From: Leucoraja ocellata | Taxonomy: Eukaryota | DNA: 64,000 nucleotides | NCBI GenBank assembly: GCA_036785375.1 | Contig: JAWMAR010000546.1 | Coordinates: 1,116,001 to 1,180,000, forward strand | Direction of reading: 5' to 3' | Shown: positions 2,586-63,276 of the stretch, one piece after another | Numbering within the stretch: position 1 is the first letter of the stretch | How the letters are laid out: each line of letters begins with the position of its first letter | The notes under the pieces: generated by a model | What the model was told of the DNA's origin: nothing | The model's input: only the letters and a program-made list of their open reading frames with translations | Databases searched by the model: none | Position numbers and translations under genes: made by a program

Positions 2586-3431
2586 GCGTTTTTTATTATT
2601 TTTTGTCTGTGTTTTTATGTAGTTTTTGTTATTTTATGTTGGGGTGTGTGTGTGGGGGGGATGGGGGTGGGGTGGGAGGGGGGGGGAAACTTTTGAATCT
2701 CTCCCTGCACTGGAGACCCGACCTTTTCTCGTCGGGTCTCAGGTGTCGTTGAGGCCGCAACGAGGAGCGGCCTCCAACGGGAAGAAGCCGGGGACTCTGG
2801 TGCCGACTCACCGTTGCCGTCGCGGAGCTGGCCGAGACCGGAGCGGGTGGAGCGGTGGAGGAGCGCTGCCGCTGCCGCTGCTGCTGCTGCTGCTGCTGCT
2901 GCCGCTGCTGCTGCTGAGTCGGAGGCTGCTACTGCGGGTCTGCGGACGGCTCGGACGACCCCGCGCGGCTCCCTGGAGGGAGACCGCTTTTCGGGGCTCC
3001 TGCAACGGCGAATTCTCCCGCCCGTGTTGCGGGGTCGAAGAGCTCCTGGAGCGGGGCCTAACACCATTGCCCCGCGCGGCTGGAACGGCCGCGGGACTTT
3101 GCGAGCACACACCGGGGGCTCCAACACCAAGACCCGGTGTGCGACCTCGCACCACCCGGCGTGGCTTCAATGGCCGCGGGACAATCGCCATCACCAGCCG
3201 GGGGCTTTGACTTTGACTCTGACATCGCGGGGGGGGGGGGGGGGAGAGTGCAGTGGAGAGATAAGTTTTTTTGGCCTTCCATCACAGTTATGTGATGGAT
3301 GTTTATGTTAAATGTAATTATGTTGTGTCTGGGGTCTATTTGTGTGTAATGTATGGCTGTAGAAACGGCATTTCGTTTGGACCTCCAGGGGTCCAAATGA
3401 CAATTAAATTGACTCTTGACTCTTGACTCTT
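2586..3431 (+). mobile_element. GC/CpG-rich non-autonomous retroposon with internal (GCT/GCC)n tract and (TTGACTC)n tail
   Basis: Inserted in the satellite. Ends ATTTCGTTTGGACC..GGTCCAAATGACAATTAAA(TTGACTC)n. 5' and 3' ends resemble the copies at 9048-12096 and 52140-52790. Trinucleotide tract at about 2864-2916. Confidence 0.7.
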
Positions 3432-6400
3432 AAACCCCTCTAAATCCCTCCAAACCACTCTAAATTGCTCCAGATCCATCTAAACCTCCCCAAAACCATC
3501 TAAACACCCCCAAACCTCTCTAAACCCATGTAAAGCCCTCTAAACACATATACACCCCTTGTAAACCCCATGTAAACCCATCGAAACCCAGGTGAACCAC
3601 TCTAAACGCCTCTAAACCCGTATAAAGCCCGCTAAACCCCGCTAAACCCCTGTAAACCACTCTAAACCCCCCCCTATAAACTCACATAAACCCATCTAAA
3701 CCCCCTGTAAACCGCACGTAAACCCCTCTACACCCTTGTTAACGCCTCTAAACATTGTAAACCCGTCCAAACCTCCAAACACCTGAAATCCACTCTAATC
3801 CCCTCCAATCCTCTCCAGAACCCTCCAATCCCCACAAAACCCCGACAGACACCATCCAAACCCCTCTAAACCCCCTGTAAAGCCAATGTAAACTCGTCAA
3901 AACCCAAACCGCTCTAAATCGTTTTAAACCCCTCTAAATCTCTCTACACCGGTAAACACCTGTAAACCCCTGTAAACCCCTCTAAACCCGCTAAATCCAT
4001 CTAAAACCCTCTAAACCCCTCTGAGCCCCTGTAAATTCTTCTAAACCCCTGTAAACCCCCATAAGTCCCTCTAAACCCCTGAAAACCTCTCTAAAACCCT
4101 TTAAATCCCTGTAAATTACTCTAAACCTCTCCACAAATATAAACACTTGTCAACCCCTTTAAATTCCTCTAAACCCCGCTAAAACAATCTAAAACACTCT
4201 ACTCCTCTAAACACCCGTACAACATTCTAACCCCCGGAAAACCCCTGCAAACCCCTCTAAACCCCTCTAATCCCCTGTAATCCTCTCTAAACCCCTAAAC
4301 CTCTCTAAACACCTGTAAACACTTGTAAACACCTGTAAACCTCTCTAAACACATGTAAACCTCTCTAAACACCAATGCACCCCTATAAAACCATCGAAAC
4401 CCCTCTAAACCCCTGTACCCCCTAAACCCATGTAAATCCGTCCAAACTCCGCAAAACCCCTCTAACCCCCTCCAGACCCATATAAAGTCATCTAAACCCA
4501 TATAACCCTTGTAAGCCCCATGTAAACCCATCTAAACCCCGGTGAACCACTCTAAACGCATCTAATCCCGTATAAAGCCCGCTAAACTCCTCTAAATCCC
4601 CTGTAAACCACTCTAAACCCCGATAAACGCAGATAAAGCCCTCTAACCCCCCTGTAAACCCTACGTAAACCCCTCTACACCACTATTAACCCCTCCAAAC
4701 CCTGTAGCTCCCTCCAAACCTCTCCAAACACCTGAAATCACCTCTAAACCCCTCCAAACCGCTCTAATCCTCTGTAGAATGCTCCAATCCCCACCAAACC
4801 CCTCTAAACACCATCCAAACCCGTTGTAAACCCTAGGTAACCGCGTCTAAACCCAAACCCCTCTAAATTCCTATAGCCCTCTAAACCCCTCGAACACCCT
4901 GTAAACCCTTCTAAACCCCTGTAAACCCCAGGTAACCCCCCTAAACCGTTGTAAACCCCATGTAAACCTCTCTAAACCACTCTAAAGCCATATAAACCCC
5001 TGTAAACCCCATGTAAACCCATCTGAACCCCGGTGAACCACTCTAAACGCCCCTAACCCCGTATAAAGCCCGTTAAACCCCTCTAAACCCATGCAACCCT
5101 TTATAAACCCCTATAAAGCCCCGTAAACCCTTCTGAACCCCCTGCAAACTCGATGTACACCCTCCAAAACCCCTGTAAACCTCATGTAAACACCCCTAAC
5201 CCCCCATCTAAACCCCCTATAAAACTACACAAACCCCTGTAAACCCATATAAACCCCTGTAATCCTCCCTAAAACTCTCTAAACCACTCTAAACATCTCT
5301 GAACAACTGTGAATCCCTCTAAACCCCTCCAAACCCATCTAACCCGCTCTAAATATCTCCAAACCGCTCCAAACCGCCCCAAACCCCTCTAAACCCATCC
5401 AAAATCCACCCACCCATATAAAGCCCTCTAAACCTCTATCCACCCTGTAAACCTCATGTAAACTCCTCTAAATCCATGTGATTCATTTTAAACGCCTCTA
5501 AACCGCAATAAAGCCCGCTAAACCCCTCTAAACCCATGTAAACCCCTCTAAACCCCCTATAAAGCCATGTAAACCCTTGTAAACCTCTCTACACCTATAA
5601 ACACCTGTAAACCCCATGTAAACTCTAAACCCCTGTAAACCCCACTAAACTCCTCTAAATCCTTGTAAACGATTGTGAACCCATGCAAACCTCTCTAAAC
5701 ATCTCTAAAACCCTGTAAACACCTTTAAACCCCTATACACCCCCTGTAAACCCCCTGTAAATGCATATGAACCCCTCTACACACCACTAAATCCCCTGTA
5801 AACCCCTCTAACTCCCTCTAGACATCTCTAAACCCATCTAAACTAAACCTCTCCAGACTCCTCCAACCCCCTCTAAACCCCCGTCCAAAGCCCTCTAAAC
5901 CCCATGTAAAGCCCTCTAACCCCATCTAGACCACCTGTAAACCCCATGTAAACACATCTAAATGCCTGCAAACCACTCACAACCCCTCAAACCCTTATAA
6001 AGCCCTCTTAACCCCTGTAAACACCTCTAAAACCATATAAAACACTCAAACCCCTCAAAACCCATCTAAACCCCATGTAGACCCCCCCCCTAACCCCTGT
6101 GAACCTCTGTAAACCTCTCTAAAACACTCAAAACCCCTCTAAACCGCTCTAAACATCTGCAAACACCTGTAAACCCCTCTAAACCCCCTATAAACCCATC
6201 TAAAACCCCTCATGTAAATCCCTGTAACTCCCTCTAAACACCTCTAAACACGTGTAAACCCCTCCGAACCTCTGTAAACCCCTCTAAACACCTTTAATCC
6301 CATGTAAACCGCAGTAAACGCCGCTAAGCCCCAGTAGACGCCTGTAAACCCCTCTAGACCACTGTGAACCCCGGTAAAGCCCTCTATAACCATCTAACCC

Positions 6401-6614
6401 CCCTGTAAACCCCCTGTAAACCCCTCTAAACCCCATGTAAACATGTCTAAACCCCTGTAAACCACGCTAAACCCCTCTAAACCACTATAATCCCCGGTAA
6501 ATCCTTTTAAACCCCTGTAAACCCCTGCAAACCTCTCTAAGCATCTCTAAAACCCTCTACGCCCATATATACCCCTCTAAACCACTCTAAACCTCGCTAA
6601 ACATCTGCAAGCAC

Positions 6615-6814
6615 NNNNNNNNNNNNNNNNNNNNNNNNNNNNNNNNNNNNNNNNNNNNNNNNNNNNNNNNNNNNNNNNNNNNNNNNNNNNNNNNNNNNNN
6701 NNNNNNNNNNNNNNNNNNNNNNNNNNNNNNNNNNNNNNNNNNNNNNNNNNNNNNNNNNNNNNNNNNNNNNNNNNNNNNNNNNNNNNNNNNNNNNNNNNNN
6801 NNNNNNNNNNNNNN
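6615..6814. other. Assembly gap (200 N)
   Basis: Run of N. Confidence 1.
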
Positions 6815-9442
6815 GTAAACCCCTGTAAACCCCCTGTAACCCCCTCTAAAGACCTGTAAAACCCTGTAAACCATTGTAAACCCATGTAAACTTTTCTAAA
6901 CATCTGTAAACCTCTGTAAACAACTCTAAATCCCTCTAAACCACTATAAGCCCCTGTAAACCCCCTGTAAATGCACCTGAACCCCTCTAAATAATCTAAA
7001 ACCCTGTTAACCGCTCTAAACCTCTGTGAATCTCTCTAAACCCCACCAAACCTCTCTAACCGCCTCTAAACATCTCTAAACCCCTCCAACCCAATCTAAA
7101 TCTCTCCAGACCCCTCCAATCCCATCCAAACCTCTCCAAACACCACTAAACCCCGTGTAAACCAGTCTAAACACATAAACTCATCTCAACCTCTCTAAAC
7201 CCATATAAAGCCCTTTAACCACTCAAAACTAATCTAGACCCCCCTGTAAACCCATGTAAACCCCCCTAACCCCATGTAAAGCTCTATAAACCCCTGTGAA
7301 CCTCTCTAAAACACTCTAAAGCCGCCTAAATCCCTCTAAACCTCTAAACACTCTTAACCCGTGTAAACCAAACTAAACCCATCTAAACCCCTGTACATCC
7401 CTCTAAACCCCTCTAAACACCTCAAAACACTTGTAAACCTCGGTAAGCCCCGCTAAGCCCCAACAAAACCCTCTAAAACCCCTCTAAACACCCTATAAAG
7501 ACCTCTAAGCCCATCTAACCCCATGTAAACCGCTGAAAAGACCTGTAAACCCCACGTAAACCAGTCTAAACACCTGTAAACCTCTCTAAAACCATTTAAA
7601 CCGCTCTAAACCACTATAAACCTCTCTAAATATCTGTAAACACCCGTAAAACATCTAAACCCCTCTAAACCCATCTAAAACCCTCTAAACCCATGCAATT
7701 CACTCTAAACCAATGTAAATCACTCTAAACCCCTGCAACCCCCTCTAAACCCCTCCAAACCTCTCCAGACCCCTCTAAACCCCTCCAAACCCATGTAAAC
7801 CCCTCCAAACCACTCTAAACCCATATAAACCCATCTACACCTTTATAAACACCTGTACACCCCATGTAAACTCCTCTAAACCATGTGAACCACTCTAAAC
7901 GCATCTATACCCCATAAAGCAGGCTAAACCCCTCTAAACCCCTCCAAACCCATGTAAACCCCTCCAAACCACTCCAAACCACTCCAAACCCATATAAACC
8001 CATCTACACCTTTATAAACACCTGTACACCCCGTGTAAACTCCTCTAAACCATGTGAACCACTCTAAACGCATCTATACCCCATAAAGCAGGCTAAACCC
8101 CTCTAAAACCACGTAAAACCCCTCTAAACCCATCTAAAACCCCTGTAAACTCCATGTAAACCCCCCTAAATCCCTGTAAACACCAGGTAAACCCCCCTTA
8201 ACCCATGTAAACCACTCTAACCCACTCAAACCTCTCTAAAACCCTCTAACCCCCTGTAAACCCCATCCAAATCTCTCTACACACCTATAAAGTACTCTAA
8301 ACCCCTCAAAACGCATCTAAACCTCTGTAGACCCCAAGTAAACCCCCCTAAACCCCTCTAAACCCCATGTAAACATATTTAACAACTTCTAAAGCCGTCT
8401 AAACCCCTCTAAACACCTGCACACCTGTAAACCACTCTAAACTCATCTAAAACACTCTAAACCATTCTAAACGCCTGTAAATCCCTCTAAAGCCTAGTAA
8501 ATCCCACTAATCCCTCTAAACCCCCTGTAAATCCCATGTAAACACCCCTACACCCCTGTGAACCCTTCCAATCCCCTGTAAGCATCTCTAAAACCCTCTA
8601 AACCCCACTAAACCCCTCTAAACCACTCTAAACCTCTCTAAACACCTGTAAACCTCATGTAAACCCTTGGAAATCTCTTAAAACCCTCCAAACCTCTGTA
8701 AACTCCTCTAAACCTCTGTACACATGTAAACACCTATAAACTCCCTTAAACCTCTCTAACCCCGCTAAACCAATCCAAAACCCTCTAAACCAATCTAACC
8801 TCCTGTAAATCATTCTAAACCCGCTGTAAACCCATTTAACACCCTCTAAAGCCGTCAAAACGCCTGTAAACCCATCCAAACCCCTGTAAATCTCTTGAAA
8901 ACACTCTAAAGCCATCTAAACCCCCTCTAAACCTATCTAAACCTCTCTAAACACCTGCAATCATCTGTAAACCCATCTTCCATCTAAAACCTCTAAACCC
9001 CTGTAAATCCCTCTAACCCCCTCTAAACACCTGTAAACACATGTAAGATTTTTAGGACTTTGAGATTTTTGCCTTCCATCACAGTGAGGAGGTGCCTGGT
9101 GAACTCACTGTGGTGGATGTTAAATTTGTGTTTATTGTGTGTTTTTGTCATTTTTTATTATATATACTAGACCAAGTGCAGACCCGTTGGGTCTATTTCC
9201 CCAACAGCGTTTGTGGGGGGGGGGGGGGGGGGGAGGGGAGGGAGGAGGAGGAAACGGGATAGATTTGGGAGTGAAAGGAGAGCGCGGTAGGGGGTGAGAG
9301 ATGGGGAGAGAGATGTGGGGGAGGGGGGATGGGGAGGAGGGAGGGATGGGGAGAGGGGGTGGGGTAGAGAGGGAAGGGGGTGGGGGAGAAAGGGATGGGT
9401 GGGAGAGGGAGAGGGAGAGGGAGAGGGGTGAGGAGAGGGAAA

Positions 9443-12025: not shown

Positions 12026-15000
12026 GACTGCAAGGCACCGAAATTTCGTTCAGACCGAAAGGTCTGAATGACAATAAAGGCTACTTTGACTTGACTTAAA
12101 CCCCGGTAAACCCCGCTAAGCCCCAGTAAATGCCTGTAAACCCATGTAGACCCATCTAGATCCCGGTAAACCCCTATCTGGCCCTCTAAAACCATCTACA
12201 CCCCGTCAACCCCATGTAAACCCCCCCAAACCCCATGTTAACCTCTCTAAACCCTTCTAAACCCCTCTAAACCCATGTAAACCCCCGTAAAGACCTGTAA
12301 ACCCCGTGTAAACACCTGGAAACCTCTCTAAAACCCTTGAAACCTCTGTAAACCCCTCTAAACCTCTCTACACCTGTAAACACCTGTAAACCAAATCCTT
12401 CTAAACCTCATGTAAACCCCTGTTAGCACCTCTAAACCCATCTAAAGCCCCCTATAACCACCATGGAAACTCCCCTAATCCCCTGTAAACCCCACGAAAA
12501 CCAATACTAAACATCTGTAATCCCCTCTAAATCCATGAAAACCTCTCTAAACCCCTGTAAACTTCTCTAAACTCGCTAAACCCTTGTAAACCCCTCTAAA
12601 CCTCTCTACGCCTGTAAACACATGTAAACCCCATGTTAACACCTTTAAACCCCTGTACACCACTCTAAAACCCTCTAAACACATGTAAACTCCTCTAAAC
12701 CACGCTAAATCTCTCTAAACACCCGTAAACACATGTAAAGTCATGTAAACCCATTAAACCCCTCTTAACACATCTAAAACTGTCTAAACCCCCCGCCAAC
12801 CTCTCCAAACCGCTCTAAACCTCTCCAGACTCCTCCAAACCCCTGAACACCCCTCAAAACCACTCCAAGCCCCTCTAAACCGATATAAAGCCATCTACAC
12901 CCTTACAAACACCTGTATACTACATGTAACCCCCTCTAAACCCTGTGAACCACTCTAAACACATCTGTACCCCCAATAAAGCCAACTAAACCCCTCTAAA
13001 ACCATGTAAAATCTCTCAAAACACTAAACCTCTGTAAACCCCATGTAATCCCCCCCTAAACCCCTCTAAACCCCTCTAAACCCCCTGTAAACCTCTTTAA
13101 CACCCTCTACAGCCATCTAACCCCTTCTAAACCTATCTAAACACCTGCTAACAACTGTATACCACTCTAAACCCCTCTAAACTCATCTAAAATACTCTAA
13201 ACCATTCTAAACGCCTATAAATCTCTCTAAACCCCTGTAATTCCCACTAGCCCCTAAACCCCCTGTAAACCCCATGTAAACCCCCAGAACCCATGTACAC
13301 CCCATGTAAAACCTCTCTAAACACATCTAAAACCCCTGTAACCTCCAATTAAACCCCCCTAAACCCCGTGTAAACCCATTCAACACCCTCTAAAATTGTC
13401 TAAACCCCTCTAAACCTCTCTAAACACATGCAAACACCTGTAAACCTCTCTAAGCCCCTCTAAACTCATCTAAAACACTCTAAACCATTCTAAACGCCTG
13501 TAATTCCCTCTAAACCCCCTGTAAACCCCCTGTAAACCCCATGTAAACCCCCCCTAAACTCATGTAAAACCTTCTAATCCCCTGTAAACATCTCGAAAAC
13601 CCTCTAAACCCCTCTAAACCTCTCTAAATACCTGTAAACACCTGTGAACACATGTAACTCCCTCCAAACACGTCTAAACCCATCTAAAAACCTCTAAACC
13701 CCTCTAAACCCCTGTAAACCCCTCTAAACCCCTGTAAATCCCTCTAAACCCCTCCAAACCACTCTAACCCCCTCGAAATTCCTCCAAACCGCTTTAAACC
13801 TCCTCAAATCCCCGCAAACCCCTCCAAAGCCCCCCAAACCCATGTAAACCCCTCTAAACTCTCGTGAACCACTCTAAATGCCTCTAAACCGCTACAAGGC
13901 CCGGTGAACCTGTCAAAACCCCTGTAAAGCCCTGTAACACCTATACAGCCCTGCAAATCCCTCTAAACCCATCTAAACCCCCTGTAAACCCCATGTAAAC
14001 CCATCAAAACCACTGTAAACTCATATACACATATGTAAACCACTCTAAACCCTGTAAGCCTCTGTACAACCTTCTAAACATCTGTACACACAGGTAAACC
14101 CTGTCGAGATTCCTCTAAACACCCTGTAAACCTCTCTAAAACCCTCTAAACATCGGTAAACCCCTCTAAACCCCATGTAAACTCCCTAAACACCTGTAAA
14201 CATTTCTAAAACACTCTAAACCCCACTAAACACCTCTAAACCACTCTAAACCTCTCTAAATATCTGTAAACATCTGTAAATTCCTCTAAACCGATGTAAA
14301 TCCCTCTAAACCCCTCCAAACCCCTCTAACCACCTCCAAATGCCTCCAAACCGCTCTAAACCTCCCCAGACACCTACACACCCCTGCAAACCCCCTCTAA
14401 ATATCTCCAACCCCTTCCAAAGCCCTCCAAACCCCTATGAAGCCCTCTAAACCCCCCTATAAACACCCTGTAAACCCCTGTAAGATACTATAACCCCATG
14501 TAAACCTCCCTAAACCACTGTAAACCTCTCTAAACCCCTATAAAGCCTTGTAAACCCTTCTAAACCCATCTAAACCCCCTGTAAGCACCATGGAAACCCC
14601 CATAAACCCCCGTAAACCCCGTGTAAAACCCCTAAACCCCTGTAAACCCCCTAAAACCCTGAAAACCCAATGTAAACACCCCTAAACCCTGTAAACCCTT
14701 CTAATCCTCTGTAAACATCTTTAAAACCCACCAAACCACTCTAACCCACTCTAAACCTCTGTAAACAACTTAAATCCAGACCAAACCCCTCTAACCCACT
14801 CTAAACCACCAAACCGCTCAAAACCTCTCCAGACCCCTCCAAACCGCCCCACACCCCTCTAAACCCCTATAACCCCTCCCTCTAAACCTCATGTAAGCCC
14901 CTCTAAATCCATGTGAATCATTCTAAACGCCTATAAACCGCAATAAAGCCCGCTAAACCCCTCTAAACCCATATAAACCTCTCTAAACCCCTATAAAGCC

Positions 15001-17133
15001 TTGGAAACCCCCATAATCCCCTGTAGACCCCGTGTAAAATCCCCTAAACCCCTGTAAACCATTGTAAACGCATGTAAACCTCTCTAAACATCTCTAACCC
15101 CTGTAAACATCTCCAAATCCCTCTAAACCACTACAAGCCCTTGTAAACCCCCTGTAAATGCATCTGAACCCCCCTAAACACCTCTAAACCCTGGTAACCG
15201 CTCTAAACCCCTGTGAACCTCTCTAAACCCCTCCAAACATCTCTAAACCCCCTGTAAACCCATGTAGACCCCTTAAACCCCTGTAAACCTCTCTAAAGCA
15301 CTCTAAAGCCGTCTAAACCCCCTATAAACTCCCGCAATCATCTGTAAACCTCTCTAAACCCATCTAAAACGCTCTAAACCCATCTGAACCCCTGTAAATC
15401 CCTCTAAACACCTCTAAACACTTGTAATCCCTGGTAAACCCCGCTAAGCCCCAATAAACGCCTGTAAACCCCTTTAGATCCCTGTAACCCCCCTCTAAAC
15501 CTCTATAAACACCCTATAAAGACCTCTAAACCCATCTATACCCAAGTAAACACCTGTAAAGACCTGTAAACCCCACGTAAACCCGTCTAGACACCTGTAA
15601 ACCCCTCTAAAACCCTGTAAAGCCTACTCAACAGCTGAAAACATCTCTAAACCTCTAAGACCATTTAACCCGCTCTAAATCACGCTAAACCTCTCTAAAT
15701 ACCTGTAAACACTCGTAAACACCTGTAAAACGCGCTAAACCCCTGTAAATCTCTCTAAACCCCTCCAAACTGCTCTAAACCTCTCCATACACCCCCAAAC
15801 ACCATGCAAACCCCCTGTAAATCCCTTCAAAGCCCTCCAAAGACCCCGCAAAGCCCCAGTAAACGCCGGCAAACCACTGTAAACCCCTTTAGATCCCTGT
15901 AAACCCCTCTAAACTAATGTAAACCTCTCTAAATCCCTCTAACCCCCCTGTAAACCATACTAAATCTCGCTACACCTGTAAACCCCTCTCCACCTGTAAA
16001 CCCCTATAAACCTCTCTAAAACCCTCTAAACATGTGTAAACCCCTCGAAACCCCTGTAAAGCCTACTAAACACCTGTAAATATCTCTAAAACCCTCTAAA
16101 CCCTTCAAAACCGTTCTAAACCCCTCTAAACCCATCTAAAACCCTCCGAACCACTCTAACCCCCTCGAAATCCCTCCAAACTGCACTAAACCTCTCCAGA
16201 GACCTCCAAACTCCTGTAACCCCCTCTAAATCCATCCAAAGCCCCCCCAAAGCCAACCAAACACATATAAAGCCATCTAACCCCATATAACACCCTGTAA
16301 ACCCCATGTAAACCAATCTAAACCGCAGTTAATTACTCTAGACGTCTCTAAACCCCTATACAGCCCGCTGAACCCCTTAAAACCCCATGTAAACACCATG
16401 TAAACCCCCAAAACCACTGGAAACTCCTCTCAACCCTTGTAAACCTGTTAATCTCTCTAAACCGTCTAAACACCTATAAACACGTGTAACCCCTATGTAA
16501 ACCCCTCTAACCCCCTGTAAACCTCTCTAAAACACCCTAAACGCCTGTAAACCACTATAAACCTCTGTAAACCCCTCTAAACACATATAAAACCCACTAA
16601 ACCCCTCAAAACCCATCTACCCCCCCCCCCCCCAAACCCGGTAAACCCCTGTAAACATCTCTAAACAACTATAAAAGCCCTCTAAACCCCTAAAAACCCA
16701 TCAAAACACCTGTAAACACGTAAACCCCCTAACCCCCTGTAAACCCTTATAAACCCATATAAACCCCTGTACATCCCTCTGAACCCCTGTAAATCCCTCT
16801 AACCTCCTCTAAACACCTCTAAACACTTGTAAACCCCGGTAAACCCCGCTAAGCCCCAGTAAACGCCAGTAAACCCCTCTAGATCCCTGTAAACCTCTGT
16901 AAACCTATCTAAACACACCATATATACCTCTAAACCCCTCTAAACCCCTGGAAACCCCTCTAAAACCATCGAAACCTCTGTAAACCCGTCTAAACCTCTC
17001 TACACCTATAAACACCTGTATACCCCTTTAAACCGCTCTAAACCCCCTAAAACGCCCTCTAAACCCCAGTAGGCCCATCTAAACCCCTTGTATACCCCAT
17101 GTAGGCCCCCTTAAACCCCTGTAAACCCCCCGG

Positions 17134-17609: not shown

Positions 17610-18003
17610 TAAATGGTGAATTAGTGGAGCGCACCAATAAATGGGGAATTAGTGGAGCGCAACGTTAAATGGTGAATTAGGGGAGCGCAACGTTAAATGG
17701 TGAATTAGTGGAGCGCAACGTTAAATGAGGAATTAGTGGAGCGCAACGTTAAATGGGGAATTAGTGGAGCGCATCATTAAATGGGGAATTAGGGGAGGGC
17801 AACGTTAAATGGGGAATTAGGGGAGCGCAACGTTAAATGGGGAATTAGGGGAGCGCATCATTAAATGGGGAATTAGGGGAGGGCAACGTTAAATGGTGAA
17901 TTAGTGGAGCGCAACGTTAAATGGTGAATTAGTGGAGCGCAACGTTAAATGAGGAATTAGGGGAGCGCATCATTAAATGGGGAATTAGGGGAGGGCAACA
18001 GTA
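17610..18003. repeat. 28-bp minisatellite (TAAATGGKGAATTAGKGGAGCGCAACGT), about 14 copies
   Basis: Head-to-tail units with no spacers. Confidence 0.92.
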
Positions 18004-27701: not shown

Positions 27702-27835
27702 CTGTAAAGAGAGGGAGAGAATATGAAAGTGTATTAGCAGTCTGTGACTAAGATGCCAGGACATCCAATGAGTGGGACAATCGCTATTTTGCCCTACTCT
27801 TCAATCAGGTGGAAAAGTAAGTGCAATGGACTCAC

Positions 27836-27963
27836 CTTCACCAGAGTTACGGCAGCACCGTAGGAAATGCTCAGGAAGAACAAGATAATGAATGTGGAAG
27901 CGGTTGTCCAGATATTGTCTCTGTCTTCCTCATAGTCCTCTAGAGGAACGTTGTCGGCGTAAT
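27836..27963 (-). CDS. IGHM: IgM TM1 exon
   Basis: (D)YADNVPLEDYEEDRDNIWTTASTFIILFFLSISYGAAVTLVK, a CART-type transmembrane motif. AG acceptor and GTGAGT donor. 128 nt, phase 1 to 0. Confidence 0.95.
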
Positions 27964-28757: not shown

Positions 28758-28967
28758 ACATATAATGCGTGGAATTGTTGTGGAAAATCTATTTCGACAT
28801 CAATCAGCATTTAAGCAGAAGAAAAATATAATATGAGCCAATAAATCTACTAGCGTGTACTATTGACACAGGGATTTTGCTTTGAAAGTCCATTGGTATT
28901 AAAGTGAGAGCCTAAATGCATTTGTGTGGTATTAATGTGGTTTTCTTTTGTGCAAATATGCGATTTT

Positions 28968-29411
28968 ACAAGGTTGAACAAGTTAGGGCTTTATTCTTTG
29001 GAGCGCAGAAGGTTAAGGGGGGACTTGATAGAGGTTTTTAAAATGATGAGAGGGATAGACAGAGTTGACGTGGATAAGCTTTTCCCACTGAGAGTAGGGA
29101 AGATTCAAACAAGGGGACATGACTTGAGAATTAAGGGACAGAAGTTTTGGGGTAAAATGGGGGGGAACTTCTTTACTCAGAGCGTGGTGGCTGTGTGGAA
29201 TGAGCTTCCAGTGAAGGTGGTGGAGGCAGGTTCGTTTTTATCATTTAAAAATATATTGGATAGTTATATGGACGGGAAAGGTATGGAGGATTATGGGCTG
29301 AACGCAGGTGTATGGGACTAGGGGAGAATATGTGTTCGGCACGGACTAGAAGGGTCGAGATGGCCTGTTTCCGTGCTGTAATTGTTATATGGTTATATGG
29401 TTTATATGGTT
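28968..29411 (+). mobile_element. CR1 LINE 3' fragment
   Basis: LGLYSLERRRLRGDLIEVFK..WNELP motif and (TATATGGT)n tail. Confidence 0.88.
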
Positions 29412-30633: not shown

Positions 30634-31026
30634 TCATTGACAGGAATTGACAGTGTCCATTAATACAAGGGAAACGTTGACAAAACTGGGGTTTACCGCT
30701 GGACTTATTGACCGTTCTGACGATGGTCTTCATGGGGAGTGCTTCGTGCCCCACTAGACAGGAGAAGGAGGCTCCGCTAGCCCACTCCTCTGCCCCAACG
30801 GATAACAGGCTGTATGTGAAGAAGGTATCATTGCCGTTCTCCGCCTCCACCTCGGTGTTCTTGTACTTGCTCTCATCCACCCGCTTGTCATCAAGTGTCC
30901 ACGTGACGAAGACCCTGCGAGGGGAGAATCCTCTCACGAAGCAGGTGAGGATGATAGTCTTGTGGGCGGAGATTTCTTCTGTCGGCGGCAGAAGGACTGA
31001 GACGGAAGGTGGCAGCAGATGTTGAC
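30634..31026 (-). CDS. IGHM: IgM CH4 exon plus secretory tailpiece (tail has a +1 frameshift as assembled)
   Basis: [39 protein letters not shown]. Internal membrane donor G|GTAAA after 30697. Removing one C from CCCC (30688-30691) gives [20 protein letters not shown]-stop, with an N-glycan site and penultimate Cys. Confidence 0.95.
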
Positions 31027-32137: not shown

Positions 32138-32436
32138 CTTTCTTCCAGTTGATTCGTTCAGTTTTTGCTTTGGCATATTACCATGGCTCACCGCGCATTC
32201 GAAATAATCCCCACTCAGCCAGTCTTGAGTCGAAATGTTGACTTTGCTCTGTACGATATCTGCATGTCCTGTGGGCTGGATGTATGATACCAAAGGTACA
32301 TTCCCACGTTTCCAAGATACTGTGATACCATAAGGTGCATCGGATACCAGACAGGTTAACGTCACGGTCATCTCCATTAACTCTTGTTCAACTTGTGGTG
32401 GAAGGATTTTAATACTCAGTTTGTCGCAGGAAACAT
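32138..32436 (-). CDS. IGHM: IgM CH3 exon (-1 frameshift near its 3' end as assembled)
   Basis: [29 protein letters not shown] and GTGAG sites give 299 nt, one short of phase 1-1. Adding 1 nt at about 32162-32167 restores ..[10 protein letters not shown]. Confidence 0.92.
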
Positions 32437-32895: not shown

Positions 32896-33213
32896 CTGGA
32901 GGCATACTGATGTTTTGGCTTTTCAAATCTTTTTCATGGTTGACTTGGCAGGTATAGACGAAATCTCCGAACCACTCTTCAGCTGTGAATGTCAACTGGC
33001 TGGTCGCCGAGAAGTTACCGGTACCGTTCACCTGGAAGGCGGGAGAGGTGACGATGCCCGAATCCAATGGCTTTCCATTCTTCAGCCAGTTCACAGTAAA
33101 TATGGCTGGGGTGAAATCGTTGACCAAACACACGGCGATCGCTTTTCTGCTGCGCTTAATTTCATCAAGAGCAGTTATGGTAATGGTGACGGTAGGATGA
33201 TGTACCACGCGGA
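32896..33213 (-). CDS. IGHM: IgM CH2 exon (intact)
   Basis: HPTVTI..AVCLVNDFTP..WLKNGK..YTCQVNH. 318 nt, ttcag acceptor and GTAAG donor. Confidence 0.95.
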
Positions 33214-34594: not shown

Positions 34595-34897
34595 CTGGTA
34601 GTTGTACTTTCACTTTATACTCGTTCTGGTTGTGCTGAACCACGCAGAAGATGTCACCTCCCCGCTGCCGCCGCCTCGGTGATGGTTAACTCGCTGCTCC
34701 GGGTGTAAGTTCCCAACTTATTGAACACTGCCGGGTAGCCCTTCACTCCGGTCTCCAGTTTTATATCATCTTTCTTCCAAGAAACACTGGCGCCCGCAGG
34801 GAATAGCCCAACGCCAAACAACCATAGGTGAACGAACCACTGGAGCCTTGATCCTCGCAGGTGAAGAGAATGAAGGGACTGGGCGCGGATGGAGCCG
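34595..34897 (-). pseudogene. IGHM: IgM CH1 exon with -1 and +1 frameshifts and an in-frame stop as assembled
   Basis: [24 protein letters not shown] / [20 protein letters not shown] / [21 protein letters not shown]. Indels at about 34800 and 34661. TAA at 34763-34761 in the spliced frame. 303 nt. Confidence 0.88.
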
Positions 34898-36943: not shown

Positions 36944-39059
36944 GTAATTTGAATGCCACTCAAACCTCTTTAAGCCATGGATTTCAATTCGCACTCTGTT
37001 CAATGATTAATGGGATACCCTGTTTTGTAATTAAAATTAAGATAGCGGAGTCAGTGGATATGGGAGAAGGCAGGAAAGGGGACTGATTGGGGAAGATCGG
37101 CCATCACATTAAATGGCGGTGCTAGCTCGAAGGACCGAATGGTCTCTATTGTCTAAATTAGCAAAGAAAATCCCGTTTCCAACATTCCATTTTTCCCAAT
37201 CTCTCTATTTTTTTTACCGCAACTATTCGTAAAGCGGACATTTTTCATTAGCAATTCCGTAAATCGAGGAACATTTTGTTTAAATGACATTGGACCCATA
37301 GACAAACACGAATTCAAATTCTCTTTTCTAATAAATCCACGGATTACAAATTTATTCAAGAACTGCAGCTGTTCCGAAATCTCCCCGTTTTACATTCAAC
37401 GCATTTTCCAAATGGAATACTCGTGATCTTTGACATAAAACAGAGAAATGGGTCATTGGGTTAGGCAGCATTTGTGGGAAAGAGGAAAGCAAGCATTTGT
37501 CAGGTCGACTATCGTTGGGAGAATAAACCATGGCGAATTCAGTTTTGATTAGAGATATAGCATTGAAATAGATCCTTCTGCCAACCAAATCAGCGGCGAC
37601 ACAAGTTCACGTTATCGCACCCCGACCCACCCGGGTCAATCACCCGGGTCAAGTACCTGCAAACCTGCACTCTTTTGGGTTGTGGGAGGAAAGCAGAGAA
37701 CCAGTAACAAACCGCAGGGAGAACGCACAGTTCTCCAGTCTGCACCTGATTTCAGGAACGAAGTCGTGTCTCTGGCGCTACCAGCTGTCATTCGACTCCC
37801 TCTATGGGATGTGTCTTTCGCCACAGGCTGCGTGACCCTCTAGGTGTTTGCAACATTTACTCTTCCCATTTATGATTTCTAACTATTTCTTGTTATTTTT
37901 ATTTTTTAAACATATATCTTCTTTGCGTTTATTGAAATAACCGAATCGGACACTTCTTACAACAGCAATACCCGGTCGCTGCCAATCGAATGGAACGTAC
38001 AAACACGCCAATTACGCACCAAATATCGTCTCCCACATGACCGGCTGAATCATACCGCCGATGGGATCAATCGCTTAACACAAATTTGCTGAAACTCTTC
38101 ACAAAAATCCAAAGTATCTCTGTCCAAAGACCACCGAAATTCATTGTTCCATTGACCACCGAGCCAATCATTGTTGAAATAACGAGGAATAACACAATAC
38201 ACGTGGATTACATAGATAACATTCCATATAATGTGAATTTCATTCAGTTCTCCGTCACCCTAGTTCCTCTGTCCCCTATTACACCCGGTACGTTGTCATT
38301 CTCTAGATCGCGTTTCACGGACTTTGCTTTCTTAGCTTTGCTGTATCATTGGTTCACATGCCAACTCATTGTACTTCAAGATAGACAAAAAAAGTTGGAG
38401 TAACTCAGCGGGAGAAGCAGAGTTACTCCAGCTTTGTGTCAATCCGGCAACATAAATCAGCATCCACAGTTCCTCCCTATTCATTGTACTTCAAGATATA
38501 TAACTGACGCTGACCTTGCTGTCTGTGTTTTGCTGCAAGAACATTTTACTTCGTCCATGCAAGTTGTGTTAGCGATTGGATTAAAGTTGGCAAGGCGATT
38601 CCACCAATTAATACATACACTTTAAAAACTTGAACATTTTACACCCAGGATTTATCCGTTTCTGTCGTTTGTTTCATATGCGCTGAGAAGAAACAAACTG
38701 AGACAAAGTACCTGCTGTTGATCAGAAAATACAGTTCGATGCATCGCAGATCAAGGACCACAACAATCTCAAACAATTAGAAAGCCTAGTGAAAGCAAAT
38801 TGATGCTCATTTTCCCACCAATTAGGAACTTAAACCGAATCCGTTCTCATAGTCAAAGGATCGAAAGTCATAGCACAAAGGCAGTTTGAATCGTGAATAT
38901 CACTGCAGCGGAATCACATAACATTCTAAAGCAACATCGATCCAACATTGCAATGAATGGGTAATTAATGTAGAGGAACAATTTAATATAATTATTGGAA
39001 ATATCGAGTAAAATTACAACTGGATACATCTAGATACTGAATAGGATGAAGTTTCTTAC

Positions 39060-39107
39060 CGTTGGTTACCGTCAACATGGTGCCTCCTCCCCAGTAGTCA
39101 AGATAGT
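39060..39107 (-). CDS. IGHJ: IgH J segment (YLDYWGGGTMLTVTN)
   Basis: WGxG motif and GTAAG donor. Confidence 0.96.
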
Positions 39108-39146
39108 CACAGTGTTACATTCTATGGGCTTCCTCACACAATAACA
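39108..39146 (+). promoter_or_regulatory. JH 23-RSS
   Basis: CACAGTG (39108-39114), 23 nt, ACAATAACA (39138-39146). Confidence 0.9.
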
Positions 39147-39470
39147 TGATCTGCACAAGGTTGGCAAAAAAGAACAAAATTCCTGTAATATTCGTATTTC
39201 ACATCGAAGGTGAATGACTTATTGCTCTTTGAAAACAATGAATGCGTTAAATAAATAATTTCCAACAATAATCAGATACCACGGCTCCGTGATTTAAACA
39301 GGGCAGAATGTGATGAGAATTATCTACATATAAAATAAAAATTACTTCAAGTTACCTATACAACAAAATGTGCGAAAAAATATCCCTGGACATGTTTATG
39401 CTCTTGTTGTATGAAATATTGAATTGAAAATATCATATACTGGCCAGACCACCGTATTATGGGTTGTGGA

Positions 39471-39538
39471 TGTTTTTGTATTGGTAGGAACCGCTGTGCC
39501 ATCCAGTATACACAGTGAAACATACCATGTCAAATACC
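39471..39538 (-). other. IgH D segment (D2 type, TATACTGGATGG at 39499-39510) with 12/12 RSSs
   Basis: V side: CACAGTG (39511-39517), 12 nt, TCAAATACC. J side: CACAGCG (39498-39492), 12 nt, ACAAAAACA (39479-39471). Confidence 0.95.
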
Positions 39539-39786
39539 TCGCTCTTCAAGAACTGGTGCATGTACTGCTCACAGACGATATGTCCCAGGAGACTCTTCGC
39601 TGTCACTTATACAGCTAAACGCTGTTCTTCTAAAGCTCATAAAATAACATTAATTGGTCGGAAGACAGTTGGACATTTCTCAAAACAATCCATGTAACTT
39701 TAAACGGTGACATTTTATTTGATTTTTCTTCACTGGGCCTCTCCTACGGTGCTTGTAGGTTGGAGCAGGAGAAAACTAGGTGTCAG

Positions 39787-39834
39787 GGTTTTTGTACGGG
39801 GAAGTCGCTGTTTGTAGCACCGTGACCCACTGTG
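39787..39834 (-). promoter_or_regulatory. Compound RSS at the VH 3' end: D1 remnant plus overlapping 12-RSS and 22-RSS
   Basis: CACAGTG (39834-39828), 12 nt, ACAAACAGC (39815-39807). Also CACGGTG (39824-39818), 22 nt, ACAAAAACC (39795-39787). Confidence 0.85.
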
Positions 39835-40139
39835 TCTCGCACAGTAATAGACAGCCGTGTCTTCGATCTTCAGGCTGCTGGCCGTCACGATGAAGATATT
39901 ATTCGTATTGTCTTTGGACGGAGTAAATCGGCTCTCTATCCCCGGCGCGAAGAACTTGGTGTAAGTAGAACCGTAGTAGGTAAGCAGCCACTCCAGCCCC
40001 TGCCCGGGGACCTGACGGACCAAAGTCATCCACTTGCTGCCAACACTGAACCCGCTGACTTTACAGTTCAGTGTGATGGAGCCTCCAGGAGTGGCCATCT
40101 CTGTCTCGGGCTGGGTTAGAACGATATCGGAATGGACAC
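39835..40139 (-). CDS. IGHV: IgM VH exon (open frame, FR2 Trp replaced by Leu)
   Basis: [68 protein letters not shown], with a ttgcag acceptor. Confidence 0.97.
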
Positions 40140-40313
40140 CTGCAAGTTAAAAACAAGGCATGAATGGCGAGGATAAAACATTGACCATTGATCCCCGACT
40201 CTAATTATCAAGAGGAAATAAATTGGGACGGTTCTAGAGTGGGTAGAAGGGGAATGGTGTAGTGGATACACCACTGAGACACTTGCGTGGGGAATTTGTC
40301 CAACATCACTCAC

Positions 40314-40359
40314 GGACTATTAACGCCAGGAACAAACTCAGTGAAACCGCCGCCATCAT
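40314..40359 (-). CDS. IGHV: IgH leader exon (MMAAVSLSLFLALIV)
   Basis: 46-nt hydrophobic exon with GTGAGT donor, phase 1, splices in frame to VH. Confidence 0.92.
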
Positions 40360-40444
40360 CCCGCTGGGAAGTGTGACCCTGTTGTTTCTGTACAGAACCT
40401 CGCAACAAACCAACTGCAAGGAGGTTGGATTTCGGCCCCTCTTA

Positions 40445-40575
40445 GAGAGAATTAAATACCCGGCAAAGAGGGCGCGGCTGTGGGCGGGACTTGTAAACCG
40501 AGCGGTGCAGCGGGCGGAGCTGAAACACGGCCCCAACTCAACAGCAACATGGACTCACGCTATCACATCTATTAG
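40445..40575 (-). promoter_or_regulatory. VH promoter: TATA-like TATTTAA, GC boxes, no octamer
   Basis: TATTTAAT at 40458-40451. GGGCGG boxes at about 40482 and 40512. No ATGCAAAT before the LINE at 40577. Confidence 0.55.
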
Positions 40576-40576
40576 A

Positions 40577-41540
40577 CACATAGAAAATAGGTGCAGGAGT
40601 AGGCCATTCGGCCCTTCGAGCCTGCACCGCCATTCAATATGAGCATGGCTGATCATCCAACTCAGTATCCTGTACCTGCCTTCTCTCCATACCCCCTTAT
40701 ACCTTTAGCCATAAGGACCACATCTAACTCCCTCTTGAATATAGCCAATGAACTGGCCTCAACTATCTTCTGTGGCAGAGAATTCCAGAGATTCACCACT
40801 CTCTGTGTGAAAAATGTTTTTTTCATCTCGGTCCTAAAAGATTTCCCCCTTATATTTAAACTGTGACCCCTTGTTCTGGACTTCCTAAACATCGGGAACA
40901 AACTTCCTGCATCTAGCCTGTCCAACCGCTTATGAATTTTGTAAGTTTCTATAAGATCCCTCCCCAATCTTCTAAATTCTGCTAACTAACCCTTCCTTCC
41001 CCATTACTCAATACCCAGTCTAGAATAGCCTGCTTTCTCGTTTGTTCCTCTACATGTTGGTTTAGAAAACTATCCCACATACATTCCAAGAAATCCTCTT
41101 CCTCAGCACCCCTGCCAATTTGATTCACCCAATCTATATGTAGATTGAAGTCACCCATTATAACTGTTTTACCTTTGTTGCACGCATTTCTAATTTCCTG
41201 TTTGATGCCATCCCCAACTCCACTACTACTGTTAGGTGGCCTGTACACAACTCCCACTAGTGTTTTCTGCCCCTTAGTGTTTTGCAGCTCTACCCATATC
41301 GATTCCACATCCTCCAAGCTAATGTTCTTCCTTTCTATTGCGCTAATCTCCTCTCTAACCAGCAACGCTACCCCGCCTCCTTTTCCTTTCTGTCTATCCC
41401 TCCTGAATATTGAATATCCCTGGATGTTCAGCTCCCAGCCTTGGTCACCCTGGAGCCATGTCTCCGTGATCCCAACTATATCATAGTCATTAATAGCTAT
41501 CCGCACGTTCAACTCATCCACCTTATTACGAATGCTCCTT
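40577..41540 (-). mobile_element. Internally deleted CR1 (endonuclease joined to 3' end)
   Basis: GITETWL, GVVYRPP, IMGDFN and ILD motifs (40982-41521) abut the C-terminus and tail (40577-40980). Confidence 0.9.
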
Positions 41541-62307: not shown

Positions 62308-63276
62308 CTATAGATGCTCCTGAACACATCATCAGTGATGTAACCTGGGGTCATTGGGTGTTTCGGGTCTTTCAACATCAGACACCCTCACCCAGGCAAC
62401 CCAGCCGTGGTTGATCAGACCACGACTTGTGTTCAGGTGGCATTCGCTCCTCCCCATGGACCTTCTCTCCTGATCCAGCCATCTCGAGGCCTTCTCCGCT
62501 GCCTCTGTGGTGTTCTTGATGGCCCTTCTCCTCGCCACTCCGTTGATGCCCATTGCACTCAAGGCTCTGTAGAGCGATTGCCCTGCAAAACCTCTGCAGC
62601 CAACCTCGATGGGCATACACCTTGCCTTCCAGCCCTGCTTGCGGCAGTCTATGACCAGCTCTTCATACTTGGCCATCTTCCTCTCGTGGGCCTCCTCCAG
62701 ATGGTCCTCCCACGGCACTGTCAGTTCCAACAAGACAATGTTTTTGGTCGTCACTGAGACCAGGAGGATATCTGGCCTCAGGCAATGTGCCGTGGGAACC
62801 TCAGCTGTTTCACCAGGTCTATGGAAAGCTGCCAGTCCTGCGCAGTCGCCAGGATTCCTGATTGATTCCTGGCTGCTGTGGTTCTTGACAGCTGCACTCC
62901 GGCTTTCACGAAGGTGATCATCTGGGTGGTGGGCCGTTCTCGTCTACAGCTGCTGATTCCCATGCTGATGGCTTCTGAAAATGGTTTAAGAACCTGGTCA
63001 TGATGCCATGTGTACCGGCCCAGCCCAAGAGCCTTTGGGCAACAGCTCAGGATGTGTTCCAACGTCCCCTTGCCTGAGCATTGCGGGCAATCTGGAGATT
63101 CCGCTTTGCCCCAGATGAAGAGGTTCGATGGGCTGGGCAGGACATCATACACTGCCTGGACCAGGAACTTGATGCGCTGTGGTTCAGCCTGCCAGAGCTC
63201 AGTCCATGTGACTTTTCGGTCCATGGCCTGCTCCCACCTTGTCCAGGCTCCCTGCTGCCTCAATCCAACTGACATC
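62308..63276 (-). mobile_element. RLE-type non-LTR retrotransposon 3' fragment (HERO/NeSL-like), frameshifted
   Basis: CCHC knuckle CPQC..HILSCC, YTWHHD (RHD motif), RPD..LELTVPWE..KMAKY restriction-like endonuclease, IEVGCRG. Confidence 0.85.
62322..62400 (-). ncRNA. Candidate rearranged (non-circularly permuted) hammerhead ribozyme
   Basis: GGGUGUC / UGAUGU..GACCC-GAAA-CACCC..ACAUCA-CUGAUGA-UGUGU. All core nucleotides present and stems I and III are perfect. Confidence 0.6.

Follow-up and report, generated by a model that had tools for sequence, protein, structure and literature searches.

In the accessible text of reports on cartilaginous fishes, the normal heavy-chain cluster is given as V-D1-D2-J, and the horned shark and the little skate are described as having partly germline-joined IgM clusters of the forms VD-J, VD-DJ and VDD-J, and also VDJ. 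By description, the cluster analysed here is like these in that a V-D1-D2-J-Cmu minilocus appears to be part fused, with the rest retaining its signals and presumably able to rearrange. It is unlike the VD-J, VD-DJ and VDD-J forms, as those excerpts present them, insofar as V and D1 alone appear fused and both D2 and J are free. Moreover, its joint gives rise to a perfect heptamer that lies 12 bp from a nonamer-like part of the D1 spacer, which sets it apart from the clusters of horned shark and of little skate as the same sources describe them.

The NS4 VJ light-chain genes of the nurse shark are, in the sections available, attributed to RAG action in germ cells, their joints having fully excised signals and coding ends processed as in lymphocytes. 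They share with our cluster the derivation of a joined gene from a split one; unlike NS4, which is a light-chain gene with a complete VJ and no signal left, the joint in our cluster is partial, retains a signal and may have a non-RAG origin. The embedded heptamer TACTGTG of VH replacement, as outlined in the partial descriptions at hand, also lies in or at a V coding end and may be cut by RAG at low frequency, but it has the opposite orientation and no nonamer, whereas at 39834 the heptamer is oriented downstream, with a nonamer matching at 7/9 letters at 12 bp. Direct VH-to-JH joining in D-less mice indicates, from what the available summaries state, that D-less heavy-chain joints can support B-cell development; joining of that kind runs against the 12/23 rule (23/23) and proceeds inefficiently, whereas a V-J joint in our cluster would obey the rule by way of a poor cryptic signal. 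A cryptic heptamer of the VH-replacement type was excluded for the heptamer at 39834 by its downstream orientation together with its nonamer-like partner. The opossum is said to have a partly germline-joined VH, with V fused to D, that still recombines, in a mammalian translocon locus.

The earlier note had read the end of the V in our cluster as a pair of overlapping signals that would allow both V-D-J and direct V-J joining. The letters are as claimed: TGT GCG AGA (39843-39835) is followed by a perfect heptamer, 12 bp beyond which stands a 7/9 nonamer, CACGGTG-22-ACAAAAACC is nested in this signal, and downstream there are both a D flanked on each side by a 12-bp-spacer signal (39538-39471) and a J whose signal has a 23-bp spacer. 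The long-spacer signal is real and fixes His-Ser-Gly at the start of the CDR3 (CAC AGT GGG T). The dual signal, however, does not seem to be built at a V end, since that end appears to be a germline V-D1 joint and the 22-bp signal the ordinary 3' signal of D1. We consider it probable that the locus is a partly germline-joined VD1-D2-J-Cmu IgM cluster, and that the short-spacer signal is a cryptic by-product of the V-D1 joint.

The minus strand of the window, by which we mean the whole stretch of 64,000 nucleotides analysed, reads as a single IgM heavy-chain cluster such as cartilaginous fishes have, complete in its exons. A signal scan and translation place leader, V, D, J, Cmu1-4 and TM on this single strand in a minilocus of ~13 kb, and all features located below lie on it. 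The leader exon, read from the sequence, occupies 40314..40359, with its ATG at 40359 and a donor GT at 40313. The V-derived part of the V exon (39835..40139) translates as an open frame ending in ...DTAVYYCAR, and it carries the usual TACTGTG heptamer as well (39847-39841). It is followed by the junction base C at 39834, which, from the comparison of contig loose ends, converts the ACAGTG of D1 to CACAGTG, and by the D1-derived coding letters ACAGTGGGT (39825..39833), which are identified by a contig match, are in frame with V and read His-Ser-Gly. The 3' signal of D1 found by the signal scan (39787..39824), expected to be the chief functional signal of the fused VD1, is composed of CACGGTG (39824-39818), a 22-nt spacer (39817-39796) and ACAAAAACC (39795-39787). 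The cryptic short-spacer signal (39807..39834) is composed of CACAGTG (39834-39828), the 12-nt GGTCACGGTGCT (39827-39816) and ACAAACAGC (39815-39807).

Signal scan and pattern count together give the two signals of a free D of the D2 type: the 5' signal, with a 12-nt spacer, at 39511..39538, and the 3' signal, made of CACAGCG, 12 nt and ACAAAAACA, at 39471..39498. The sequence between them is the D coding segment TATACTGGATGG (39499..39510). The J signal, with a 23-nt spacer, was located by signal scan at 39108..39146, and the J coding segment YLDYWGGGTMLTVTN was read from the sequence at 39060..39107, with a donor GT at 39059. Cmu2 (32896..33213) and Cmu3 (32138..32436) are open on frame-by-frame translation, Cmu1 (34595..34897) has two frame breaks in short homopolymers (at about 34799-34805 and 34660-34663), and Cmu4 with the secretory tail (30634..31026) has one, in CCCC at 30688-30691. 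The first transmembrane exon spans 27800..27963, its 3' end being approximate.

The V exon was searched singly and the C exons were translated frame by frame, with no spliced model assembled. The V-exon homolog search, over proteins shorter than V-plus-C chains, returned 12 candidates, among which the best named relative is an Ig heavy chain V region from Heterodontus francisci (Pfam PF07686) at 62% identity, and identity to Chiloscyllium VH is 58-60%. None of these 12 candidates is a paralog protein, and an exact look-up in the protein collection gave no exact copy of the V open frame. No second V was found by tblastn over the whole window, nor any match to Rfam families at the gathering threshold over the same extent. 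The signal scan yielded 8 signal-like sites on the two strands of the window, 5 of them inside the V-J interval, and no separate D1 flanked by any of those five was found between 39100 and 39840. The five are the pair at the V end, the two signals of the free D and that of J.

Positions 39000-40500 were compared with two DNA-like contig sets (X1 and X3), an RNA-like contig set (X19) and a raw polyA RNA run (X22); the kinds of X1, X3 and X19 are program guesses, the runs bear other organism labels, and at most 0.39 of words were found in any run. Record 6 of X1 is identical to the window over 39742-39833 (0 differences) and then continues with 26 unlike letters. Reverse-complemented by hand, these begin with the last letters of a nonamer and go on through a 12-nt spacer to CACTGTG and TACA. 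The unjoined D1 of this contig is TACAACAGTGGGT, with a 12-bp signal on its 5' side and, on its 3' side, a CACGGTG-22-ACAAAAACC identical to that of the window. One X3 contig has the same D1 form and extends to the start of the 5' nonamer; a second, diverging at 39828, has TACAGTGGGGGGT, and three RNA reads from X22 have TACAGTGGGT. The contig loose ends lie at 39833 (X1, X3, X22) and at 39828 (X3), and the CACGGTG-22-ACAAAAACC letters follow the unjoined D1 in X1, X3 and X22. Because the contigs run on into unjoined D1, the letters 39833-39825 of the window are assigned to D1 coding sequence, and the long-spacer signal to D1 as its own 3' signal. Since V runs into D1 letters, and no separate D1 precedes the D with 12-bp spacers on both sides, the cluster reads as VD1-D2-J, partly germline-joined. 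The supposed V-to-D interval would then be the interval between D1 and D2.

On the same assignment, the cryptic heptamer would be made of the junction base C and D1's ACAGTG, and its spacer of the last three coding letters of D1 (GGT), the 3' heptamer of D1 and two spacer bases; the nonamer-like ACAAACAGC would sit within the 22-nt spacer of D1. The equivalent of position 39834 is A or T in 3/3 unjoined D1 forms, which gives no CAC start. As base 1 of the heptamer is A or T in all three of them, the motif is apparently neither conserved nor selected as a signal. Two other origins of these letters were tried and rejected. If CACAGTG were the start of a 23-bp signal belonging to the V itself, its nonamer would be CTTCCCCGT, 23 nt downstream, which is no nonamer, and the good nonamer lies 32 nt off. 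A 10-bp tandem duplication (CACAGTGGGT / CACGGTGCTA) agrees in just 6/10 letters, and the D1 origin accounts for the letters.

By letter count alone, the short-spacer motif is a rare one. CACAGTG-N12-ACAAAAACC with up to 2 mismatches has 3 matches in the window, where 100 shuffles lead one to expect 0.06, and 0/100 shuffles reached 3 matches; the other two matches are the real 5' and 3' signals of the free D. Nine-letter words within 2 mismatches of the nonamer make up 0.26% of the window's 126,366. Perfect CACAGTG heptamers number 19 in the window, and three of them are paired with a nonamer of this kind at a legal spacing (the J, the 5' side of D, and the cryptic one), the remaining 16 having at least 3 nonamer mismatches at every spacing from 10 to 25. 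The cryptic signal, a statistical outlier among these heptamers, has 0 heptamer and 2 nonamer mismatches, and the real D 5' and J signals of the cluster have 2 nonamer mismatches each. Its spacer is 12 nt long, and the GGG run that sets this length is borne out by short-read contigs from paralogs.

The nonamer positions that matter most are 5-7. In the cryptic nonamer ACAAACAGC, a C at position 6 and a G at position 8 leave the A-run at 5-7 broken, and the cryptic spacer begins with GG in the window sequence. In the accessible text on SARP-seq, which assays 12-bp signals in massively parallel fashion, the use of CACAGTG is reported to change more than 50-fold with the first two spacer bases (PMC9723617). 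GG is the lowest-ranked spacer start there, CACAGTGGG scoring 0.020, while CACAGTG with an AT or CT start (CACAGTGAT and CACAGTGCT) scored 1.144 and 1.150, values that were obtained on plasmids carrying a consensus nonamer, with mammalian core RAG, and are guides only for shark RAG on chromatin (PMC9723617, Table 1). Under the same caution, CACAGTGTT scored 0.829 and CACGGTGCT, which is CACGGTG+CT, scored 0.499 in the top spacer quartile (PMC9723617, Table 1). The consulted sections also attribute little specificity to heptamer position 4, and two non-consensus nonamers lowered signal joints in that mammalian system to 22% and 1% (PMC9723617). The cryptic signal overlaps the perfect-nonamer signal, so that simultaneous binding of both would be impossible. 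Owing to its GG spacer start and its nonamer broken at position 6, the 12-bp signal, though legal on paper, is predicted to be weak. Among the features of a working 12-bp signal, it has a CAC-type heptamer and a 12-nt spacer; it lacks the nonamer A-run, a suitable spacer start, and conservation in related copies.

With V and D1 fused in the germline, the fused exon would end in ...CAR-His-Ser-Gly and retain the 3' signal of D1. Rearrangement would be expected to take two steps, one in which the CACGGTG-22-ACAAAAACC of VD1 joins with the 5' 12-bp signal of the free D and one in which the 3' 12-bp signal of that D joins with the 23-bp signal of J. The cryptic 12-bp signal could also pair with the J signal under the 12/23 rule and give a D-less V-J joint, and the proposal that it is a legal partner holds formally, the J lying ~700 bp downstream in the right orientation. 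Such D-less joining would probably be rare if it occurs at all, given the poor spacer start and nonamer and the overlap with a much better signal. The predicted short product, CAR+YLDYW, could arise from V-J joining with 2 nt trimmed from J or 1 nt added, but not from an untrimmed joint, which is out of frame because 14 nt of J precede TGG. A further suggestion, that the 12-bp signal might cut an already formed VD-D intermediate to J, fails because ACAAACAGC leaves with the excised 22-bp signal; by hand count, an untrimmed VD1-D2 joint has 3/9 nonamer letters left at 12 bp.

The RNA and read evidence on use comes from the same four runs. X22 reads lie on the gene's strand only, with a depth of 3-7 over intersegment DNA, and their depth is 28.9 in the J signal region against 28.4 in J and at most 2.7 in V. 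At 39060, 27 X22 reads exit into Cmu1-like letters, as at a splice, and at position 39075 the reads differ from the window in 32/32 cases. X22 is mostly unrearranged transcript of another copy, and for this reason it is unable to reveal V-J joints of the cluster in the window. X19 contains spliced leader-to-V letters, seen as loose ends at 40311 and 40139, which may derive from this cluster or from another. A V unitig of X19 (record 13, 90 nt, 0 differences) ends exactly at 39835, where either varied sequence follows AGA or the unitig simply ends. This end fits use of the cryptic signal and, equally, a normally rearranging, near-identical unjoined V. None of the pieces listed from X1, X3, X19 and X22 spans 39834/39835 as the window reads. 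The depth of X1 and X19 in the bin 39816-39866 comes wholly from contigs whose last matched position is 39833 or whose first is 39835; the depth of X3 in this bin is 411, its component pieces lying outside those listed. Several of the 1-bp indels between window and runs, in the 1.5 kb compared, lie within short runs of one letter.

The reading closest to the earlier note is that both overlapping signals are used, one giving long VD1-D2-J and the other very short D-less V-J CDR3 classes, as a built-in switch. A perfect heptamer, an exact 12-nt spacer and a 7/9 nonamer, of which 0.06 sites would be expected per window, speak for it, as do a consensus match on a par with the real D 5' and J signals of the cluster, the presence of a correctly oriented J with its 23-bp signal about 700 bp downstream, and the stop of the X19 V unitig at the predicted cut, 39835. 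Nevertheless, we hold this reading to be very unlikely. Letters 2-7 of the heptamer are D1 coding sequence and the essential first C is missing in the three unjoined D1 forms, the GG start is the worst for a spacer (a reduction of more than 50-fold) next to a nonamer whose A-run is broken at position 6, and a perfect-nonamer signal overlaps the motif. The unitig end is equally explained by a near-identical unjoined V, and no joints appear in the 4 runs, of which X22 consists for the most part of unrearranged transcript and the rest are contigs. As a working switch, then, the 12-bp route is unsupported, with a GG spacer start at 0.020 against 1.14-1.15, a poor nonamer and a heptamer absent from unjoined D1. 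A rival with the same anatomy concerns the joint alone, and we regard it as possible but doubtful: a non-RAG deletion between a V heptamer CACAGTG after AGA and the ACAGTG of D1, across 6 bp of microhomology, in which case the heptamer at 39834 would be the original V heptamer. Such a deletion leaves a junction with no added or unexplained base, and the V proteins predicted for Chiloscyllium have CAR|H and CARD|HSE, that is, CAC AGT G in frame after the V end; the X19 V unitig, too, ends at AGA. The same letters, however, would result from a RAG coding joint with one base added and 1-4 nt trimmed from D1, germline joints of nurse shark light chains look RAG-made in the parts of that literature at hand, and the coding end of an unjoined V in the source species may lie beyond AGA.

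The cluster might also be a dead one, with neither signal mattering to the repertoire, and the two frame breaks in Cmu1 and the one in the secretory tail of Cmu4 point that way. All three breaks lie at short homopolymers, though, and the window shows 1-bp indels against every covering run at 39443 and 40220, and against all contigs and 11/12 reads at 39188; these fit errors of the assembly consensus as well as they fit differences between paralogs. Leader, V, D and J are intact, as are Cmu2, Cmu3 and every splice site. The Cmu breaks may be consensus error or may mark a young pseudogene, and we judge a pseudogene to be rather unlikely. Possible 1-bp errors in the assembly, and the fact that none of the listed contigs in the four public runs spans 39834/39835 as the window does, could further be taken to mean that the V-D1 joint is not germline at all and reflects an assembly error or a somatic rearrangement caught in the consensus. 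An assembler would not typically, however, drop a few hundred bases cleanly and in frame at 6 bp of shared letters, and one clone of lymphocytes would not prevail in the consensus of a genome. The runs compared are labelled as other organisms and each contains 0.39 of words or less, and partly joined clusters are, by the accounts available, well known in cartilaginous fishes. A joint of this non-germline kind therefore seems extremely unlikely to us.

A partly germline-joined VD cluster is an already known type of gene. In the literature searched, in which subscription papers are thinly covered, we found no paper on a cryptic heptamer created by a shark germline joint. Titles and abstract openings of the papers listed on overlapping, nested or dual signals held nothing comparable, and those on VD-joined clusters since 2015 held no such report. 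The phrase 'overlapping RSS' occurs in the visible part of one bat IgH preprint.

Use of the cryptic 12-bp signal is unlikely, and it is quite improbable that the V-D1 joint by accident made a 12/23-legal signal which RAG uses at a low rate, giving both VD1-D2-J and D-less V-J chains. If this were true, the cluster would make D-less, light-chain-like V-J chains with a 6-residue CDR3, and two overlapping spacer classes would compete at one coding end. The locus would in that case offer a natural setting in which to test how overlapping signals compete, as well as a way of making D-less heavy chains within the rule. More speculative is a thought on D1 itself, in which a 5' heptamer is followed by 1-4 nt, TACAGTG or AACAGTG, 12 nt and ACAAACAGC. 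This layout resembles what a decayed signal joint of two 12-bp signals might leave, and such an origin, if true, would bear on how D segments arose and on the 12/22 asymmetry of D1.

In conclusion, our data suggest that a perfect heptamer is not necessarily a V signal when it lies at a V end. Partly pre-joined heavy-chain clusters set a heritable limit on CDR3 diversity, which in the window would act through a fixed His-Ser-Gly, and they are classic evidence for the action of the recombinase in germ cells. The cluster described here adds a clean case in which the unjoined form of D1 is visible in public reads.

The first D segment, D1, is fused to V in this cluster, and the part that the window has in common with unjoined copies of D1 (paralogs known from public contigs and reads) spans positions 39807-39833. 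Because the unjoined copies run from a 5' heptamer CACTGTG through 1-4 nt to a heptamer-like TACAGTG or AACAGTG, and from there through 12 nt to ACAAACAGC, D1 resembles, as judged from its sequence, two 12-bp signals that stand head to head and have decayed. One of the unjoined copies, from the raw polyA RNA run X22, carries ACAAACAAC, with C replaced by T at 39808 on the plus strand in all three reads. At the 3' end of V an embedded heptamer, TACTGTG (39841-39847), points upstream; the window's V shares this element with most VH genes of other vertebrates.

On the gene's strand, the polyA RNA of X22 covers the DNA between D and J, that between D1 and D2, and the J signal (39060-39815), and J is spliced to Cmu1 in 27 reads. 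The RNA over 39060-39815 is mostly unrearranged, "sterile" transcript, and its source is a closely related cluster.

The constant region contains three frame breaks, two in Cmu1 (34799-34805 and 34660-34663) and one in the secretory tail of Cmu4 (30688-30691), each of them at a short homopolymer; either the gene is a young pseudogene or these are consensus errors of the assembly. There are 1-bp indels at 39188, 39443, 40220 and 40464, where the window deviates from all covering contigs and nearly all covering reads, and these agree with one another. Several of these sites lie within short base runs, and the differences may hint at assembly consensus errors or may be differences between paralogs.

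Retrotransposon-like pieces with open frames flank the cluster at 40662-41521 and 28926-29321, and one of the two frames reads ...GITETWLQ..., which we take to be the endonuclease-like start of a candidate retrotransposon-type piece. Two stretches of roughly 5 kb each, 3431-9038 and 12097-17129, consist of a repeated 10-bp unit that reads TAAACCCCTC on the plus strand, with about 65% matches; both have the transmembrane exon upstream of them and a GC skew near -0.7, their G-rich strand being that of the Ig gene. A 28-bp repeat of 13.9 copies occupies 17610-17999. The Rfam search at the gathering threshold returned no family in the whole 64,000-nt window, including 62322-62400.

V, CDR3 and J of a predicted Rhincodon typus protein share a single frame, running through ...CARDWGGSLHYWGQETMVTVTA..., and its gene, as assembled in the whale shark, resembles a VDJ whose segments are all joined in the germline.
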